The notes under the pieces were generated by a model. The model searched no databases. It saw only the letters and a list, made by a program, of their open reading frames with translations, and was not told the DNA's origin. A stretch of DNA of 64,000 nt from NCBI GenBank assembly GCA_904063045.1, contig CAJFCJ010000030.1, forward strand, positions 372,001-436,000, given 5' to 3'. The DNA comes from Dimorphilus gyrociliatus (Eukaryota > Animalia > Annelida). The position numbers and the translations under genes were made by a program. Below are positions 12,605 through 26,426 of the stretch, piece after piece (the first letter of the stretch is position 1; every line of letters starts with the position of its first letter).

Positions 12605-14673
12605 TTTCATTTCTAGCTGAATACTACTTATGTAAAGTACAAAAAATAGTGAAATAAGTTGTAAATATTGTGTTCTATCAATAGATGGCGTTTTGTTGCT
12701 TTAAACAATTTTCCTTTTCAAATATTTAATGGGACAGCCTTTTTACTGCTCCTGCAAAAGCTGTTGCATAGTTAGATTAAAAACCGAAAATTATACAATG
12801 AAGCGATTGTATAATCACCATGGGAACGTAAATTTTGTTCTTTCATCTCATCTAAATGATTGAAAGGAAAAAGAAGGGAATGCGTAACTACAAAGGTACA
12901 AATTATCTTTGGAATGCTACTTATTACAATAAAGCGTTTTAAGTAACAGATAATGAAAATTTGTTTGGAAAATAAAATAAAATACTATTAAAAGCTACTA
13001 ATTGAAAGAGGAGAAGCAGAGAGAATGAAGAAAACATTCCTGGAATAGTATTACCATATTACGCAATTGCATCAAACTATCTTCCTTTTCTTCTCCTGCA
13101 AGTTGAATAGAGCATAATTAATTAAGATGAAATCGTAAAAAAAAAATCAATATCGAAGCTTAAACTGAACTCAATTTCGATTGAATCTCTTTCATTCGTG
13201 CAAGCTATCAAGAATAAGGATTTCTATAGTAATTGAATAACCTTGTGACATGAGCTGACGTAATAGTTCTTTAAAAGTATACTTTTATTGGAGATACCGT
13301 GACAATAGTTGCTGATTTATTTAAATATTTTTCTATTACAGTCTCCTTCTCTAACTAATCAAGTTTTGATCATTTTAGAATATTCGTATACTAATTTATT
13401 CATAATATTTAAAATTTAAATTCATTATAACGATTTTAAACAGTATAATGAAAATAACCTTCCTTTGTTCAGTCTCTTTATTTTTTTCGGCTTAGACGTT
13501 AAATGATGGAATTAGTCAAACACTGGTCTGATTAGAATAATGAATTATTGCTAAAACGGTAATGGTTGAAGACACTGGTTCTTTATATCTGCCAATATGA
13601 CATCAATAACGGAATACTTCAAACATAAAATCATGATAGAAATAGGTTCTCACTCATAGATAAACAAACTACAACTATGTGTTAAAATTGTTTGCATCAG
13701 TAATATCGAAATTTAAAGAATCCTAATTAAGTGATGTAAATACGCTTATCAGAATGGGAAAATATTCTAAAGAAACTTCTTTGCTGTACTACTTTGTTAT
13801 ACGTGAAAAGCGAGTTTACTTTCAATTTTTATATAAGTTAAATATGTAATACGTTTTGAAGCAAAATCTATAAGTTAATAAAGTTATTCATTAAAAATAA
13901 CTATATATATAAGGTCAAATGTTAAGTTAAAAAGAAAAAAGAGTCTTTTTTCAGAAATTGCCCTTTTCTCTTGTCATAAAATCAAGGATTCGTAAAATTT
14001 AGTTTCATCAATTTTTTACTGAGAAAAATTTTATAATAAACCCATGTTTCAGCATATTACAGAATATCTTTAAAATATTGAATTTGCAGTCTTTTCAGAG
14101 TCCAATACTTGCATATTTCAATAATGAGTTCAAAAGTTTAATAAAAGTGCTTTATTTGTAAATTATATTTTAATTTTTATATTATAGTCTTATATATTAC
14201 CCAATTTAATCTCTTTTAACATATTTATTATAATCTTCAAATATGTTGTCTGAGATAATACTTTTTAAGCTATTTTATTTGTACCCTATAACACTCAAGA
14301 TGGCGTTAGCATACGATTAGTTTGTTATACTAGTTTTGTATTTCAGAACCTTTTTTTTGGATTGTTTTTGTATTGTTTTTTTTCTTTCTAGTAAAGTATT
14401 TTGTCAACAATTTGTCATACAAAGTTGAAAATATAAAAATAACTTTTTTCAATCAAAATTGTTTCATATAACCAAAAAAGAATATCAATTATTCACAGAT
14501 ATAAATTTTATACTGTAGCATAAAATCATCAACAGTCTCTTCAATGTCATTAACATTGAAAGATAAAATAATCTTTTTTTTATTTAAATAATATGAGAAA
14601 TGTAAAAAAATAAAAAAAGTCATATAAAAGAAACAAATATAGCAACCATAATTTGCTAATTGATTAGTGGTGT

Positions 14674-16415
14674 TCAATGGAAAAGTAGACAAGGGATAGA
14701 CGATGATATAGCTAGAAGGAAAATGCTAAATTTTGTTTGGGTGCCTGATACTTCTGTGGTTGTCAAAATGGTTGGTTCAGTGGTTGGTTTAGTAGTTGGT
14801 ACAGTGATTGGTTCAGTGATCAGAGTGATGGTTGATTTCGCAGTTAGTTCCGTTGTTGGTTTGGTAGTTGGTTTAGTTGTCGGAGTGATGGTTGTTGGTT
14901 CAGGAGCAATGTTAAAAAAGTCTTCGCATTTCGTCATAATCCAGTCGGGAACTTTAAAAAATTAGACAAGTCATTAGGTTACAATATCTAATCAAATATG
15001 TAGTTAACCCTACTGGAAGGCAATCCGTCACTTGATGTACAAGTTTCTGGGGATTCATTGAGTTCACTTCGATCTGTAATAAAATCTTTTACTAAGGCTT
15101 CTGGAGGAGCTCCGAACTTCATCGCGCATTTGAAGCTATCAAGAACATCATCGGTTACAATAGCACATGCTCCAATTCTTGAAGCTGGAGCGGAAAAAGT
15201 GATCCTTGGCTCGTCAAAGGTTCCAAAGGTTAACGCCTTGTCGTCCTTATCAGTCATAATACCTTTAGGTGCCCAGTTTCCGCTGTAGTCGTTAAAGCAA
15301 AAAGCAAGATTTTGGTTGTTACCTAAGTTTGCATGAGTTTTTCTTTTACAGTTTGGTATAGCTATTGAGAAACAAATTAAAGTGAAAATGTGTGTTTTAA
15401 AAACATATTGATATATACCCATAGCAACGACAAAAGCCGAATACGAATCAGTTAAATTGCCATTTTTAAAACCAGAGCAAGAATATTTGCCGGTAAGGTA
15501 AGTTGCTGTTACCAGAACAGTAAGATCAAAAACGTTTGGCGTTGCGAATCGAAAAAGGTGTTTTAAGAAACTATAGACTTTAAATGAGTCTGAAACAACC
15601 ACACCTATCCCAGTCTGACTTTGAATAAGTGAATAAATGACGGCGTCGTGATCATTTTCGTTAATATCGTTGCATCTTAATACTATTGATGTGTTAAGTC
15701 TGGCAACAGTATTGGCTAGTCTCGTATTCTTATCGGGAAGTTTTAAAAATTCCAGACAGCATTTCTTTAAATAAGCTGGTACATTGGTGTCCCCATTAGC
15801 ATGATTGTCACAAGTAGTTCCAGAAAATTCTGGAGGCTTAGCATGATAGCTTTTATCATGAACAAGATCATATGGGGGAGATTCAAAATCAAAAGCACAT
15901 TTGAACGACGCGTTCTTATCAATGAGAGCACAGGCTCCTACAGCTAAAATAAATAACAATCAATTAGTTAAAACCTTTCTATTAAACTGATTTTATATAC
16001 TCGAATATTTAGCGTTTGAACGACCAGCATTATCATCATGACTTGTAAATTGAACGAAATTCATGAGATTGTCAACTGTCTCTATCTTTACTCTTGGTGC
16101 CCAATTTCCAGCATATTACGTATGGCAATAGCGATATCTTTATTTAGTTCATAGTCTTGATTCGGTACATCAACCTTCGCACACTTAGGAGTTTCATCTT
16201 AAAAATGAAAAAGTTTTAAACTTGTCAATACAGAACTGTCTTTGAATACAGCTGTGTTTACTGGGCGATAGCGCAGTTTAGCCCCATCACATATTACAAT
16301 AACTGAAAAGCAAAGTTTTTAACTTTCATTTTAAAGTTAGAAATATAATAAAACTTAATAAAAACTCACTGGAGAAAGTAATAAAAATCCATTGAAATGC
16401 TTGGAACTTGAACAT
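14674..16415 (-). pseudogene. Ig-superfamily GPI-anchored protein, copy A; 5' half disrupted, 3' half intact. Exons: 16370-16415, remnant exon 2 from 16302, 16001-16197, 15419-15943, 15014-15361, 14674-14951
   Basis: Aligns exon for exon with copy C. Relative to C it has a 299-bp deletion (junction at CAG 16231-16233) removing most of the first Ig exon and its donor, a GAA>TAA stop at 16116-16118, and a 1-bp deletion (exon 3 is 197 nt versus 198). Exons 4-6 keep open frames and GT/AG sites. Confidence 0.75.
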
Positions 16416-17506
16416 TTTGTCGAGTTTCGTTCGAAAGTCTAGCTCCTTATGGTGCAACACAATAAATTGTGAAAGAATTAGTTAATTTGTAGTTGTTTTT
16501 AGTTGGCTTTATATTTACTTCCTAAATTACAACTTAGATTAGATATTTTAATGACCCGATGGTTAAGATTACTTAAGTAGTGCGAAATAGATACAGTGAT
16601 GAATAATTTACAATTTTGTATTCTCTTTTTATAAAGACACTTTTAGAACTGATAATAGGGAATAATCAAAAAAAAGAAACTAAGTAAAGAAGTATTTATA
16701 ACTAATTTACGAATAATTGAATACAAAACAATGAAAAAGTCAAGAGAAGGATGAAATTTTATTGCAACGTCAAGAGATTTTACTATATTAGTATCATCAT
16801 CATAATTTAAAAGTAGTTTCGATATAATTTTAAATTATTGTTTAACAAGTCTGTCTATACAGTAAAATAATAAATTCAATATATATAATGCTAAATGAAA
16901 ACTGCCAAGGTGAATAAAAAAATAGTATTAGAAGAGAAGGTGTATTTGAAAATATTCTTCTGAAAGAGATCAATTTAAATTTCGAAGAACCTAAATAATT
17001 TTAAAAAGAAGAAATCTCAACCTTTAAGGGGTAACTTTGAAATCAGATAACATTTGAACTTTTCAAACAGATTTAATATAATCTTCAAATATATTGTCTG
17101 AGATAATACTTTTCAAGCTATTTTAATTACACGATAAAAGACTTAAGATTTTGTTAGCATACGATTAGTTTTTTATAATATTTAAGAATCTTTTTTCGGA
17201 TTTATTTTTTTATTTTCTTTTTTCTTTCAAGTAAAGTATTTTGTCAACAATTTGTCATACAGGAGTTGAAAATATAAAAACAACTTTTTTCAATCAAAAT
17301 TGTTTCATATAGCCATAAAGGAATATCAATTATTCACAGATATATGGTATAAAGTCACCAACAATCTATTCAATGTCATTAATATTGAAAGAGAAAATCA
17401 TCTTTTTTATATTTAAACAATTTGAGAAATTGTAAAAAAATAAAAATAAGAGTCATGTAAAAAAAGCAAATATAGCAATCATAATTTGCTAAATAATTAG
17501 TTGTTT

Positions 17507-20500
17507 TCAATGGAAAAGTAAACAAGTGACAGAAGAAAATATTGCTAGAACGAAAATACTAAATTTTGTTTGGGTAGCTGATGCTTCTGTGGTTGTCGAA
17601 ATGGTTAGTTCGGTGGTTCCTTTGGTAGATAGTTTGGTGATAGATATGGTTGTTGGTTCGGTAGTTTGCTTGGTGGTTGGTTTAGAAGGTTGTTTGACAG
17701 TTGGTTTGGTAGTCGGTTTCGTAGTCAGAGTGATGGTTGGTTTAGTAGTTGGTACAGTGATTGGTTCAGTGGTCAGAGTGATGGTTGATTTCGCAGTTAG
17801 TTCCGTTGTTGGTTTGGTAGTTGGTTTAGTTGTCGGAGTGATGGTTGTTGGTTCAGGAGCAATGTTAAAAAAGTCTTCGCATTTCGTCATAATCCAGTCG
17901 GGAACTATAAAAAATTACATAACAAATTAAGTTACAATACTTACTCCAATATGTAGTTAAACATACTTGAAGGCAATCCGTCACTTGATGTACAAGTTTC
18001 TGGAGATACATTAGGTTCACTCCTATCTGTAATAAAATCTTTAATTAAGGCTTCTGGAGGGGCTCCAAATTTCATTGAGCACTTGAAGCTATCAAGAACA
18101 TCATCAGTTACAATAGCACATGCTCCGATTCTTGAAACTGGAGCGAAACTGCCGATCCTTGGCTCGTCAAAAGTACCCAAGGTTAACACCTTGTCGTCCT
18201 TATCAGTCATAGTAACTTTAGGTGCCCAGTTTCCACTGTAGTCGTTGAAGCAAAAAGCAAGATTTTGGTTATTACCCAAGTTTGCATGAGTTTTTCTTTT
18301 ACAGTTTGGTATAGCTATTGAGAAAAAAATTAAAGTGAAAACGTTGTTTCAATAACATATTGATATATACCCATAGCAACGACAAAAGCTGAATAAGAAT
18401 CAGTTAAATTGCCATTTTTAAAACCAGAGCAAGAATATTTGCCAGTGAGCTGAGTTGTTGTATCCAGAACAGTAAGATCAAAAACGTTTGGCGTTTCGAA
18501 TCGAAATAGGTTTTTTAAGTGATCATAAACTTCAAATGAGTTTGTAAGAATCCAACCTTCACCAGTTTGACTTTGAGTAAGTGTATAAGCGCCAGCGTCG
18601 TGTTCATTTTCGTTAATATCGTTGCATTTTAATACTGTTGATGCGTCAAGTCTGGCAACAGTATTGGTTAGTCTTGTATTCTTATCGGGAAGTTTAAGAA
18701 ATTCCAGACACTTCTCCTTCAAATAAGCTGGTACATTGGTGTCTACACTAGCAGGATTCTCACAAATAGTTCCAGAAAATTCTGGAGGCTCATCATGATA
18801 ACTTTTGTCAAAAACAAGATCATATGGGGGAGCTTCAAAATCAAAAGCACATTTGAACGACGCGCCCTTATCAATGAGAGCACAGGCTCCTACAGCTAAA
18901 ATAAATAACAATCAATTAGTCAAAACCTTTCTATTAAACTTATTTTATATACTCGAATATTTAGCGTTTGAAGGACCAGCATTATCATCATGACTTGTAA
19001 ATTGAGCGAAATTCATGAGATTGTTAGCTGTCTCTATCTTTACTCTTGGTGCCCAATTTCCAGCGTATTCCGTATGGCAATAAGCAATATCTTTATTTTG
19101 TACATAGTCTTGATTCGGTACATCAACCTTCGCACACTTAGGAGTTTCATCTTAAAAAAGAAAAATTTTTAAATTTGTCAATACAGTAGTGAAAAACTGG
19201 AAGAATACACACCAATTGCTGAAAGATATGCATGATAGTAAGTGTCTCTGCTGCCATTACGGAACCCTACACATTCATACAATCCAGTTGTATATTCATC
19301 TACTTTTGTATTGAGAAGGTGATAGTTGTCGTCATCCGGTAGTTTAAATCTGCTTTGAAGGTGTATCAAGATTTCGTAGTTGTTGGCAATAATATAATGA
19401 TCACTGGTTTGACTTGCTTTAAATACCCAATTTGTATATTCGTAATAACCTGGTGCATCTATAGCTGAGCAATTTAAAAGTGCAGAACTGTCTTTGAATA
19501 CAGCTGTGTTTACTGGGCGATAGCGAAATTTCAGAGGTTGAGTGGTTGGTTTGGTAGTTAGTTTGGTGGTCGGAGTGATGGTTGTCGATTCATGAGCAAT
19601 GTTGAAAAAGTCCTCGCATTTCGTCATAATCCAGTCAGGAACTATAAAATATTAGACAAGAAATTAAGTTACAATACTTACTCCAATATGTAGTTAAACA
19701 TACTTGAAGGCAATCCGTCACTTGATGTACAAGTTTCTGGAGCTTCATTAGGTTCACTCCGATCAGTAATAAAATCTTTAATTAAGGCTTCTGGAGGGGC
19801 TCCAAATTTCATTGAGCACTTGAAGCTATCAAGAACATCATCAGTTACAATAGCACATGCTCCGATTCTTGAAACTGGAGCGAAACTGCCGATCCTTGGC
19901 TCGTCAAAAGTACCCAAGGTTAACACCTTGTCGTCCTTATCAGTCATAGTAACTTTAGGTGCCCAGTTTCCACTGTAGTCGTTGAAGCAAAAAGCAAGAT
20001 TTTGGTTATTACCCAAGTTTGCATGCGTTTTTCTTTTACAGTTTGGTGTAGCTATTGAGATAATAATTAAAGTGAAAACGTTGTTTCAATAACATATTGA
20101 TATATATACCCATGGCAACGACAAAAGCTGAATAAGAATCAGTCAAATTGCCGTTTTTAAAACCAGAGCAAGAATATTTGCCTGTCAGCTGAGTTGTTGT
20201 ATCCAGAACAGTAAGATCAAAAATGTTTGGCGTTGCGAATCGAAAGATATTTTTTAAATGCTCAACAACCTCAAATGAGTTTGTAAGAATCCAACCTTCA
20301 CCAGTTTGACTTTGAGTAAGAGTATAAACGCCAGCGTCGTGTTCATTTTCGTTAATATCGTTGCATTTTAATACTGTTGAAGCGTTAAATCTGGCAACAG
20401 TGTTGGTTAGTCTCGTATTCTTATCAGGAAGTTTAAGAAATTCCAGACACTTCTCCTTCAAATAAGCTGGTACATTGGTGTCTACACTGGCAGGATTCTC

Positions 20501-21406
20501 ACAAGTAGTTCCAGAAAATTCTGGAGGCTCATCATGATAACTTTTGTCAAAAACAAGATCATATGGGGGAGCTTCAAAATCAAAAGCACATTTGAACGAC
20601 GCGCCCTTATCAATGAGAGCACAGGCTCCTACAGCTAAAATAAATAACAATCAATTAGTTGAAATCTTTCTATTAAACTTATTTTACATACTCGAATATT
20701 TAGCTTTGGAAGAACCAGGATTATCATCATGACTTGTAAATTGAGCGAAATTCATGAGATTGTTAGCTGTCTCTATCTTTACACTTGGTGCCCAATTTCC
20801 AGCGTATTCCGTATGGCAATAAGCGATATCTTTATTTTGTTCATAATCTTGATTTGGTACATCAACCTTCGCACAATTAGGAGTTTCGTCTTAAAAATAA
20901 AAAAGTTTTAAACTTGTCAATAGAGAATTAAAAAACTTTAAGAAGACACACCAATTGCTGAAAGATATGCATGATAGTAAGTGTCTCTGCTGCCATTACG
21001 GAACCCTACACATTCATACAATCCAGTTGTATATTCATCTACTTTTGTATTGAGAAGGTGATACGTGTCGTCATCCGGTAGTTTAAATCTGCTTTGATGG
21101 TGTGGCAAGATGTCGTAGTTGTTGGCAATAATATAATGATCACTGATTTGACTTGCTTTAAATACCCAATTTGTATATTCGTAATAACCTGGTGCATCTA
21201 TAGCTGAGCAATTTAAAAGTGCAGAACTGTCTTTGAATACAGCTGTGTTTACTGGGCGATAGCGAAGTTTAGCCCCATCGCATATTACAATAACTGAAAA
21301 ACAAAGTTTTTAACTTTCATTTTAAAATTAGAAATATAATAAAACTTAATAAAAACTCACTGGAGAAAGTAATAAAAGCCCATTGAAATGTTTGGAACTT
21401 GAACAT
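17507..21406 (-). CDS. Ig-superfamily GPI-anchored protein, copy B, a double-length fusion gene (about 1118 aa). Exons: 21361-21406, 20952-21293, 20692-20889, 20110-20634, 19704-20051, 19213-19641 (chimeric), 18953-19150, 18371-18895, 17967-18314, 17507-17904
   Basis: All ten exons have GT/AG boundaries, all introns are phase 1, and the spliced frame (3357 nt) is open. Architecture: signal peptide MFKFQTFQWAFITFSIIVICDG, four [Ig V/I-like + six-Cys GNWAP domain] modules, Thr/Pro stalk, hydrophobic C-terminal tail (KFSIFVLAIFSSVTCLLFH). Confidence 0.85.
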
Positions 21407-23030: not shown

Positions 23031-24433
23031 AGAATATTCACATACTAATTTATTCATAATCTTTAAAATTTTAATTCATTATAACGATATTAAATAGTAT
23101 ATTAATAATTATACACAACTTTGCTTTGTTCAATCTTTTTAATTTTTTTTTGGCTTATACGTTACATGATGGAATAAGTCAAACAGTAGTGATCTTAATA
23201 GAATAATGAATCATTACTAACACGGAAATGGTTGAAGCCACTGGTTCTTTATATCTATCAATATGAAATCAATAATGGACTACTTCAAAGATAAAATCAT
23301 GATAGAAATAGGTTCTCACTCAGAGATAAACAAACTAGAACTCTGCGTTAAAATTGTTGGTATCAGTAATATCCAAAATGTAAAGAATCCAACTTAAATG
23401 ATGTAAATACCCTTATCAGAATGAGAAAATATTTTAAAGAAACTTCTTTGTTATACTTAAAGTGTTTATTTGACTAGAAATCAAAGAAAAAAGCTTTTTC
23501 TATTTCAATTGAATCAAGTTGAAAAGAATTTATTGTTAAAAGCATAGAATTCAACGAGTTCCTACTATTAGACTGGGTGAAAAGCGAGTTTACTTCCAAT
23601 TTTTATATAAGTTAAATATGTAATAGTTTTGAAACGAAATCTAAAAGTTAATAAAGTTTAATAGTTATTAAAAAAAACTATATATATAAGGTCAAATGCT
23701 AAGTTAAAGAGGATAAAGAGTCTTTATTGAGAAATTGCTCTTTTCCTTTTGTCATAAAATCAAGGATTCGTAAGATTTTGTTTCATCAATTTTTTTCTGA
23801 GATAAGTTTAATCATTAATCACCAATGTTTCAGTACATTACAGAATATATTAAAAATATTGTATTTGCAGTCTTTTCAGAGTCAAATACTTGCAAATTTC
23901 AATAATAAGTAAAAAAGTTTGACAGAAATGTAAATTATCTTTTAATTTTTATATTATACTCTTATTTTATATCCAATTAAATCTCTTTCAACTTTTCGAA
24001 CAGATTTATTATAATCTTCAAATATATTGTCCGAGATAATAATTTTCAAGCTCTTTCAATGATACCATAAAACACTTAAGATGGCGTTAGCATACGATTA
24101 GTTTTTTATAATATTTAAGAATCTTTTTTCGGATTTATTTTTTTATTTTCGTTTTTCTTTCAAGTAAAGTATTTTGTCAACAATTTGTCATACAAAGTTG
24201 AAAATATAAAAACAACTTTTTTCAATCAAAATTGTTTCATATAACCAGAAAAGAATATCAATTATTCACAGATATATAGTATAAAATCATCAGCAGTCTA
24301 TTCAATAGCATTGACAGTGAAAGAGAAAATCATCTTTTTTTTAGTTAAATAACTAGAAAAGTAGTAAAAAAAATAAAAGTCATGTAAAAGAAACAAATCT
24401 AGCAACCATAATTAGTCAATTAATTAGTTGTGT
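23030..24433. repeat. Duplicated 3' flank of the Ig genes (paralogous to about 13377-14673 and, in part, 17057-17506)
   Basis: Colinear blocks, e.g. AGAATATTC..TACTAATTTATTCATAAT at 13377 and 23030, and CAACAATTTGTCATAC in all three flanks. Confidence 0.85.
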
Positions 24434-26426
24434 TCAATGGAAAAGTACACATGTGATAGATGAAAATATAGCAAGTAGGAAAATACTAAATTTTGTTTGG
24501 GTAGCTGATGCTTCTGTGGCTGTCAGAGTGGTTGCTTTAGTGGTTGCTTTGGTAGTTGGTTTGGTGGTTGCTTTGGTAGTTGGTTTAGTTGTCGGAGTGA
24601 TGGTTGTTGGTTCAGGAGCAATGTTAAAAAAGTCTTCGCATTTCGTCATAATCCAGTCGGGAACTATAAAAAATTACATAACAAATTAAGTTACAATACT
24701 TACTCCAATATGTAGTTAAACATACTTGAAGGCAATCCGTCACTTGATGTACAAGTTTCTGGAGATACATTAGGTTCACTCCGATCTGTAATAAAATCTT
24801 TAATTAAGGCTTCTGGAGGGGCTCCAAATTTCATTGAGCACTTGAAGCTATCAAGAACATCATCAGTTACAATAGCACATGCTCCTATTCTTGAAGCTGG
24901 AGCAGAACTGCCGATCATTGGCTCGTCAAAAGTGCCAAAGGTTAACGCCTTGTCGTCCTTATCAGTCATATTAACTTTAGGTGCCCAGTTTCCACTGTAG
25001 TCGTTGAAGCAAAAAGCGAGATTTTGGTTAATACCTAAGTTTGCATGAGTTTTTCTTTTACAGTTTGGTATAGCTATTGAGAAACAAATTAAAGTGAAAA
25101 CGTTGTTTCAATAACATATTGATATATACCCATAGCAACGACAAAAGCTGAATAAGAATCAGTTAAATTGCCGTTTTTAAAACCAGAGCAAGAATATTTG
25201 CCTGTCAGCTGAGTTGTTGTATCCAGAACAGTAAGATCAAAAACGTTTGGCGTTTCGAATCGAAATAGGCTTTTTAAGTGATCATAAACTTCAAATGAGT
25301 TTGTAAGAATCCAACCTTCACCAGTTTGACTTTGAGTAAGTGTATAAGCGCCAGCGTCGTGTTCATTTTCGTTAATATCGTTGCATTTTAATACTGTTGA
25401 TGCGTCAAGTCTGGCAACACTATTGGTTAGTCTCGTATTCTTATCGGGAAGTTTAAGAAATTCCAGACACTTCTCCTTCAAATAAGCTGGTACATTGGTG
25501 TCTACACTGGCGGGATTCTCACAAGTAGTTCCAGAAAATTCTGGAGGCTCATCATGATAACTTTTGTCAAAAACAAGATCATATGGGGGAGCTTCAAAAT
25601 CAAAAGCACATTTGAACGACTCGCCCTTATCAATGAGAGCACAGGCTCCTACAGCTAAAATAAATAACAATCAATTAGTTGAAATCTTTCTATTAAACTT
25701 ATTTTATATACTCGAATATTTAGCGTTTGAAGGACCAGCATTATCATCATGACTTGTAAATTGAGCGAAATTCATGAGATTGTTAGCTGTCTCTATCTTT
25801 ACTCTTGGTGCCCAATTTCCAGCGTATTCCGTATGGCAATAAGCAATATCTTTATTTTGTACATAGTCTTGATTCGGTACATCAACCTTCGCACACTTAG
25901 GAGTTTCATCTTAAAAAAGAAAAATTTTTAAATTTGTCAATACAGTAGTGAAAAACTGGAAGAATACACACCAATTGCTGAAAGATATGCATGATAGTAA
26001 GTGTCTCTGCTGCCATTACGGAACCCTACACATTCATACAATCCAGTTGTATATTCATCTACTTTTGTATTGAGAAGGTGATACGTGTCGTCATCCGGTA
26101 GTTTAAATCTGCTTTGAAGGTGTATCAAGATTTCGTAGTTGTTGGCAATAATATAAGTATCACTGGTTTGACTTGCTTTAAATACCCAATTTGTATATTC
26201 GTAATAACCTGGTGCATCTATAGCTGAGCAATTTAAAAGTGCAGAACTGTCTTTGAATACAGCTGTGTTTACTGGGCGATAGCGAAATTTAGCCCCATCG
26301 CATATTACAATAACTGAAAAACAAAGTTTTTAACTTTCATTTTAAAGTTAGAAATATAATAAAACTTAATAAAAACTCACTGGAGAAAGTAATAAAAATC
26401 CATTGAAATGCTTGGAACTTGAACAT
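24434..26426 (-). CDS. Ig-superfamily GPI-anchored protein, copy C (about 562 aa). Exons: 26381-26426, 25972-26313, 25712-25909, 25130-25654, 24726-25073, 24434-24663
   Basis: Spliced frame is open (1689 nt) with five phase-1 GT-AG introns of 56-67 nt. Ig hallmarks: LLNCSA..TNWVF..YHLLNTKV..TGLYEC and VLKCND..FDLTV..TGKYSC. Two paralogous Cys-rich domains carry YAGNWAP and YSGNWAP. Thr-rich stalk followed by a hydrophobic tail with no cytoplasmic domain (GPI signal inferred). Confidence 0.87.

Follow-up and report, generated by a model that had tools for sequence, protein, structure and literature searches.

An in-frame join between the head of a last exon and the body of an exon 2 was identified inside the gene DgyrCDS14159 of Dimorphilus gyrociliatus. 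Its structure, its reading frame, the uniqueness of its junction and its presence in the public gene model are established, and the join is very probably a real feature of the genome. The gene lies in a stretch of 64,000 nt (C30:372001-436000, hereafter the window) of the 77.9-Mb assembly, in AT-rich eukaryotic DNA with introns of 56-62 nt. It belongs to a cluster of three genes for Ig-like surface proteins, all on the minus strand, the other two being an intact paralog and a pseudogene (Table 1). In a normal gene of this cluster two modules are followed by a Thr-rich stalk, which consists of 12-nt repeats, and by a hydrophobic C-terminus that lacks a cytoplasmic tail; the fused gene codes for four modules. 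The event is of a known kind, and this recent, clean case of it comes from an Ig family that is unstudied.

Table 1. Features of the fused gene and its two neighbours (positions in the window)
Feature	Position	Strand	Description
Fused gene (DgyrCDS14159)	21406-17507	-	10 exons, 1118 aa
Exon 1	21361..21406	-	Start codon and most of signal peptide; one of only 3 such gene starts genome-wide
Exon 2	20952..21293	-	End of signal peptide and V-set-like Ig domain, module 1
Exon 3	20692..20889	-	First part of second, Cys-rich domain, probably of Ig fold (GNWAP motif), module 1
Exon 4	20110..20634	-	Remainder of Cys-rich domain, internal tail motif, then Ig domain of module 2
Exon 5	19704..20051	-	Cys-rich domain, probably of Ig fold, module 2
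Fusion exon (exon 6)	19213..19641	-	Last-exon head 19641-19542; junction-specific 19541-19532; exon-2 body 19531-19213 (V-set Ig, module 3)
Exon 7	18953..19150	-	Copy of exon 3
Exon 8	18371..18895	-	Copy of exon 4
Exon 9	17967..18314	-	Copy of exon 5
Last exon	17507..17904	-	Tail motif, long Thr-rich stalk (12-nt repeat, ~17 copies), GPI-signal-like hydrophobic C-terminus without cytoplasmic tail, stop; one of only 3 such gene ends genome-wide
5' repeat unit	19542..21270	-	1729 nt; 95.2% identity to 17805-19531
3' repeat unit	17805..19531	-	1727 nt; 97.8% identity to neighbouring gene at 24541-26290
Intact single-length paralog	24434..26426	-	6 exons, 562 aa; CAD5125979.1 (DgyrCDS14160), translation identical
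Pseudogene paralog	14674..16415	-	Most of exon 2 deleted; 1-nt deletion in exon 3 leading to a stop ending at 16088

The fusion exon (429 nt) has AG ahead of 19641 and GT after 19213 and is in phase 1 at both ends. Its first part, 19641-19542, aligned to the first 100 nt of the three intact last exons (starting at 17904, 24663 and 14951) with 89-90% identity and encodes the conserved tail motif and the first Thr-rich stalk repeats. The part from 19531 to 19213 corresponds to exon 2 from base 24 onward, with 97-100% identity to the other exon 2 copies. Approximately 10 nt (19541-19532) fell outside both alignments. BLAST E values for each part were between 1e-31 and 1e-41, which rules out chance resemblance. 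The switch between 19532 and 19531 coincides with a codon boundary (CTG followed by AAA) and the frame is kept. In normal genes the signal peptide reads ...CDG-A-K, and the downstream half of the fused gene starts at the K of the mature N-terminus. The join is thus placed one residue past the likely signal-peptide cleavage site, with one presumed mature N-terminal residue missing. Absent between the two parts are the remainder of the stalk, the hydrophobic tail, the stop, the intergenic DNA, exon 1 and intron 1. The initial annotation had described an exon that begins as a last exon and turns in frame into exon 2 at about 19531, with the upstream GPI tail and stop, the intergenic DNA and the downstream promoter and signal peptide all gone, and the alignments agree with it on both counts.

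The 10-exon model of the fused gene has GT-AG boundaries in 9/9 introns and zero internal stops. Its translation of 1118 aa, with four modules and a Thr-rich linker of ~20 residues, reproduces the product first proposed from the sequence (about 1118 aa with a short Thr linker). The gene is an in-frame multi-exon tandem repeat within one transcription unit, with units at the identity given in Table 1, an open frame and intact splice sites. No degraded remnants of the family were detected by tblastn elsewhere in the window, including the 3-kb spacer at 21.7-24.2 kb, and Rfam returned no match over 14-27.5 kb of the window. A block of ~110 nt, 150-260 nt past each stop, was almost invariant in the three genes (17250-17360, 24180-24290 and 14410-14520, minus strand); the sequence directly after the stop was ~85% identical among them. 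The block may be an element of the 3' UTR or the product of gene conversion.

The assembly was produced from PacBio data (PBcR, Quiver, Pilon) and then processed with HaploMerger2 and SSPACE-LongRead (PMC7854359). The junction sequence has a single occurrence in it, with zero Ns at the junction. Near-identical repeats are present in the region, and an assembly that has been haplotype-merged and scaffolded could in principle carry a junction made by a chimeric read, by HaploMerger2 or by a scaffolding error; such an artefact is considered very improbable here. The two parts of the junction are non-homologous, in the same orientation, in frame and joined at a codon boundary, whereas collapse, repeat mis-joining or haplotype merging would switch between copies at aligned positions. 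The ~33 private substitutions of the 5' half mark it as a real separate copy. Counted across the whole genome, the segment of promoter, exon 1 and intron 1 is present three times, the hydrophobic tail with its 3' flank three times and the ectodomain unit four times. Neither an orphan gene start nor an orphan gene end of this cluster was found anywhere in the 77.9 Mb, so that no stalk and 3' end is left over for the 5' half and no promoter and exon 1 for the 3' half. Three starts and three ends against four units, together with the non-homology of the joined parts, make a repeat mis-join unlikely.

The fusion exon is not new as a sequence; the public gene set already includes it without comment. 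The protein CAD5125978.1 (DgyrCDS14159, P0009, 1510 aa) contains the junction and is identical to the 10-exon model over 1101 residues. After these residues it exits the last exon at 17559, skips 1361 nt as an intron to resume at 16197 and reads through the pseudogene, with the hydrophobic tail spliced out. Inside the pseudogene it uses a donor at ~16120, just ahead of the frameshift. The pseudogene has lost ~270 nt of exon 2, of which an exon remnant remains at 16302-16231; conservation is still good in its promoter region, later exons and 3' flank. The gene models were built with Augustus, Exonerate and PASA and combined through EVidenceModeler, and the median intron of D. gyrociliatus is 66 nt (PMC7854359). 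Given the 1361-nt intron against this median, a donor placed in conserved coding sequence and a broken domain, the extension past 17559 is probably an annotation over-extension in which the predictor rescued a pseudogene.

That the public model runs into the pseudogene rather than ending at 17507 does count against the 1118-aa product and the deletion origin proposed below. The locus could be real and the product different, either because the gene is silent or decaying or because transcripts do splice from 17559 into the pseudogene at 16197, exactly as the public model has it and next to a copy that has in fact become a pseudogene. We regard this as improbable. The 3.3-kb coding sequence is intact with nine canonical introns, and the two halves, 95% identical, differ by 22.5 synonymous against 26.5 replacement differences. 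The resulting dN/dS of 0.31 shows, as an estimate from the sequence, past purifying selection, and gives no date for it relative to the join. The additional intron is far longer than the species median, its donor lies inside the conserved coding sequence of the hydrophobic tail, and the extension utilizes a truncated domain that skips the frameshift, as is typical of pseudogene rescue by a predictor. The 1118-aa product is predicted from the gene structure, and its expression is presumed.

Pfam searches with every exon matched the fusion exon only, to the V-set family PF07686 (E 0.011; 16.4 bits, below the gathering cut-off of 26). By predicted fold the same domain was classed as V-set, a type defined by a beta-sandwich with the B-F Cys pair, the core Trp and G-x-Y-x-C; the Cys pair and the G-x-Y-x-C motif were invariant in 13 family domains. 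An AF2 model of the fusion exon, built on an alignment of these 13 domains, gave pLDDT values of 87-97 for the Ig part and under 50 for the tail motif and Thr linker (residues 1-33), and the ~20-residue linker of the fused protein is predicted to be disordered. In Foldseek the Ig part was led by antibody V, CAR D1, JAML, RAGE V and Kirrel3 D1 (E ~1e-5), with more than 500 matches at E ≤ 1e-3 and all of the best 50 at E ≤ 1e-4. The Cys-rich (GNWAP) domain of exon 5 had no Pfam match and nothing usable in the ESM Atlas. Its AF2 model, from an alignment of 10 sequences, was all-beta (pLDDT 80.7), and the best Foldseek matches were MHC alpha-3, TCR constant and PD-L1 domains (best E 1.3e-3, TM 0.5-0.6). 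On these models each module is composed of a V-like Ig domain and, probably, a C-like domain of Ig fold.

The translations show an N-terminal signal peptide and a C-terminal hydrophobic stretch with small residues before it and no cytoplasmic tail, from which the fused protein would be expected to lose its signal peptide by cleavage and to be GPI-anchored. The initial annotation had called it a receptor, a label that is unsupported: neither a ligand nor a signalling part nor a homolog with a known function turned up. The stalk is a 12-nt (PTTK) minisatellite of ~17, 5 and 4.5 copies at 17621-17827, 24527-24606 and 14769-14877, respectively. Since the copy number differs among the genes, stalk length varies independently of module number.

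Sequence relationships among the copies were mosaic. The three intact copies of the unit (5' unit, 3' unit and neighbouring gene) differ at 101 variable sites, at 68 of which the 3' unit pairs with the neighbour, leaving the 5' half as the odd one out and the most divergent copy. The two halves of the fused gene pair at 20 sites, 14 of them in one run within exon 5 (20063-19864), and the 5' unit pairs with the neighbour at the remaining 13. When changes were polarised with the pseudogene, 33 unique derived changes fell in the 5' half and 4 in the 3' half, many of them synonymous or intronic. Over ~600 nt (neighbour 26285-25686) the 3' unit matches the neighbouring gene at 99-100% identity, and the head of its last exon (17904-17734) matches the pseudogene's at 99.4%. 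Copy-to-copy divergence was 7-21% in the flanks and 2-5% in the gene bodies, introns included. Near-identical tracts, shared runs and bodies closer than their flanks indicate that gene conversion has been active among the copies, and sequence relationships therefore need not mirror origin. A simple tree as a means of separating the possible origins of the join was rejected on these grounds. In a separate comparison, the N-terminal V-like exon of the 5' half (20953-21270) differed from that of the neighbouring gene (25973-26290, minus strand) by replacements at 8/8 differences, with 0 synonymous, clustered at ~21146-21064; these are too few for significance.

The most likely origin of the join, which we favour with moderate confidence, is a non-homologous deletion that brought together two adjacent paralogs lying head to tail. 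About 1.4 kb or more would have been lost, with one breakpoint in the 12-nt PTTK stalk repeat of the upstream gene and the other at base 24 of exon 2 of the downstream gene. An in-frame microhomology of 3-4 nt, AAA(T), may have been used at the join; every stalk has AAA codons repeated in frame, and the exon 2 sequence at the break is GCT AAA T. Four modules rather than two would then be placed under a single promoter and behind a single signal peptide, and a single Thr-rich stalk and GPI-type C-terminus would end the product. Within the fusion exon, the last-exon fragment is 10% different from all intact last-exon heads, and this, with the ~8-fold excess of private changes in the 5' unit, fits two distinct parent genes. 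The history is blurred, to judge from the alignments, by the conversion tracts described above (the 600 nt shared with the neighbour, the 14-site run of exon 5 and the 99.4% identical head shared with the pseudogene).

An intragenic tandem duplication of 1.74 kb, from base 24 of exon 2 to approximately base 105 of the last exon, with most of the 3' copy later overwritten by conversion from the neighbouring genes, would yield the same product structure. Tandem duplications of about this size are common mutations, the conversion tracts that it calls for are demonstrable, and the derived exon 5 tract is common to both halves. It would nevertheless need conversion of ~85% of the 3' copy, or a rate asymmetry of ~8-fold (33 against 4 unique changes), and would leave a duplicated last-exon head 10% different from the gene's own, and we consider it the less likely origin. 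Of the deletion between tandem copies first put forward for this locus, the head-to-tail, in-frame join stands; deletion as its cause is less secure, as duplication gives the same structure and conversion has scrambled the relationships that might have told the two apart.

The family appears to be narrow. An exhaustive HMMER search with exon 4 returned only 8 relatives, 4 from D. gyrociliatus and 4 others, one of which came from the Logan collection. The fusion exon (142 aa) had no match among proteins of 78-248 aa, an uninformative result, as D. gyrociliatus transcript fragments seem to be absent from that collection. No published mention of these genes, or of any Ig/GPI family in Dimorphilus, was found. 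Six-frame searches of the genome located distant paralogs on C1, C12 and C23 and in a 14-kb array at C6:1871.5-1885.3 kb.

A scan of these loci for the tail motif separated two classes of exon. In terminal exons the tail motif is followed by a long Thr/Pro stalk and a hydrophobic end. Internal exons use the same phase-1 acceptor as last exons and continue through the tail motif and a short linker into the next Ig domain. Thr/Pro-rich internal linkers were found at four positions, three on C6 (1874668, 1875487 and 1881396) and one on C12 (2309627). In the C12 gene, DgyrCDS9127 (CAD5120561.1), the 20-residue linker is similar to the first part of the terminal stalk of the same gene, and the fragmentary relative P0008 has the C12-type linker in common with it. 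The C6 array (1871500-1885300) is dense, with ~15 alternating V-like and Cys-rich domains, and terminal exons with stalk and hydrophobic end were found only at 1877081 and 1883040. By motif order it looks like genes of ~7, 6 and 2 modules. Family members would on this count carry 2 to about 7 modules, a range that shows a four-module member to be unexceptional in length.

Because the internal exons of C12 and C6 have the same build and retain Thr/Pro relics, the joining of stalk to Ig domain looks recurrent, and the proposal that ectodomain length changes in this family is upheld. The two modules within one gene of the window are 25-35% identical, and there module 1 is followed by a diverged tail motif that runs straight into the second Ig domain, which indicates that the old doubling used the same module boundary. 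The earlier view of the join as a repeat of the module-doubling step is therefore sound as regards the boundary, after the tail motif and before an Ig domain; the support does not reach as far as deletion as the cause.

The locus gives a nucleotide-resolution view of a surface protein gaining a whole block of domains in one step, with both parent-like copies alongside. What was once a membrane stalk now serves as a linker between domains, and relics of such a step survive in older paralogs of this genome. Attention is also drawn to a public gene model (1510 aa) that is likely over-extended, and to an Ig family, restricted to its lineage and so far unstudied, in a miniature annelid used as a model. 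A broader and speculative reading, to which we give little weight, is that fusion of a stalk exon's beginning with the Ig exon of the following copy is a general and repeated route to 2 to ~7 modules in a dinophilid-restricted (V-C)n family, that the join in the window is the youngest and perhaps polymorphic, and that the family is a fast-evolving recognition system. The last part is suggested by gene conversion together with the excess of replacement changes in the N-terminal V domain, for which counts are small. If true, selection would act on how far this recognition system (self/non-self, gamete or microbe) reaches from the membrane.

General concepts are unchanged, since domain-block duplication and the fusion of tandem paralogs are well known. 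The human haptoglobin Hp2 allele and the long-homologous-repeat size variants of complement receptor 1 are in-frame, head-to-tail repeats of multi-exon blocks. As in the fused gene, a block of ~1.7 kb or larger is repeated within one transcription unit and adds whole domains to a secreted or surface protein. Their junctions are in introns or at homologous positions, whereas that of the fused gene is exon-to-exon, from stalk to Ig domain, with a relic of the stalk as linker. Lepore-type hybrids (delta/beta globin, opsins, CYP11B1/B2, KIR hybrids) arise by unequal crossing-over of tandem paralogs. They resemble the favoured deletion route in that a deletion between tandem neighbours leaves one gene's 5' part attached to the 3' part of the next. 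Such crossovers are at homologous positions and keep length. The fused gene is not a homologous hybrid of this type, as approximately position 105 of a last exon is joined to position 24 of an exon 2, end to start and non-homologously, and length is doubled.

The GPI-anchored IgSF proteins of the CEACAM5/PSG type form a tandem family with a variable number of two-domain units and gene conversion. The family in the window is similar in its tandem Ig genes of putative GPI type, its varying number of two-domain units and gene conversion among its copies. No sequence relationship between the two was detected, and the unit here is composed of a V-like domain, a probable C-like domain and a Cys-containing tail motif. 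Closest in build are the distant paralogs of the same genome, DgyrCDS9127 on C12 and the genes at C6:1871.5-1885.3 kb, with ~30% identity, internal exons of the same build and a Thr/Pro stretch of 10-20 residues. Their joins appear old, with modules that seem far less alike, whereas the join in the window is young and the two halves that it connects are 95% identical.
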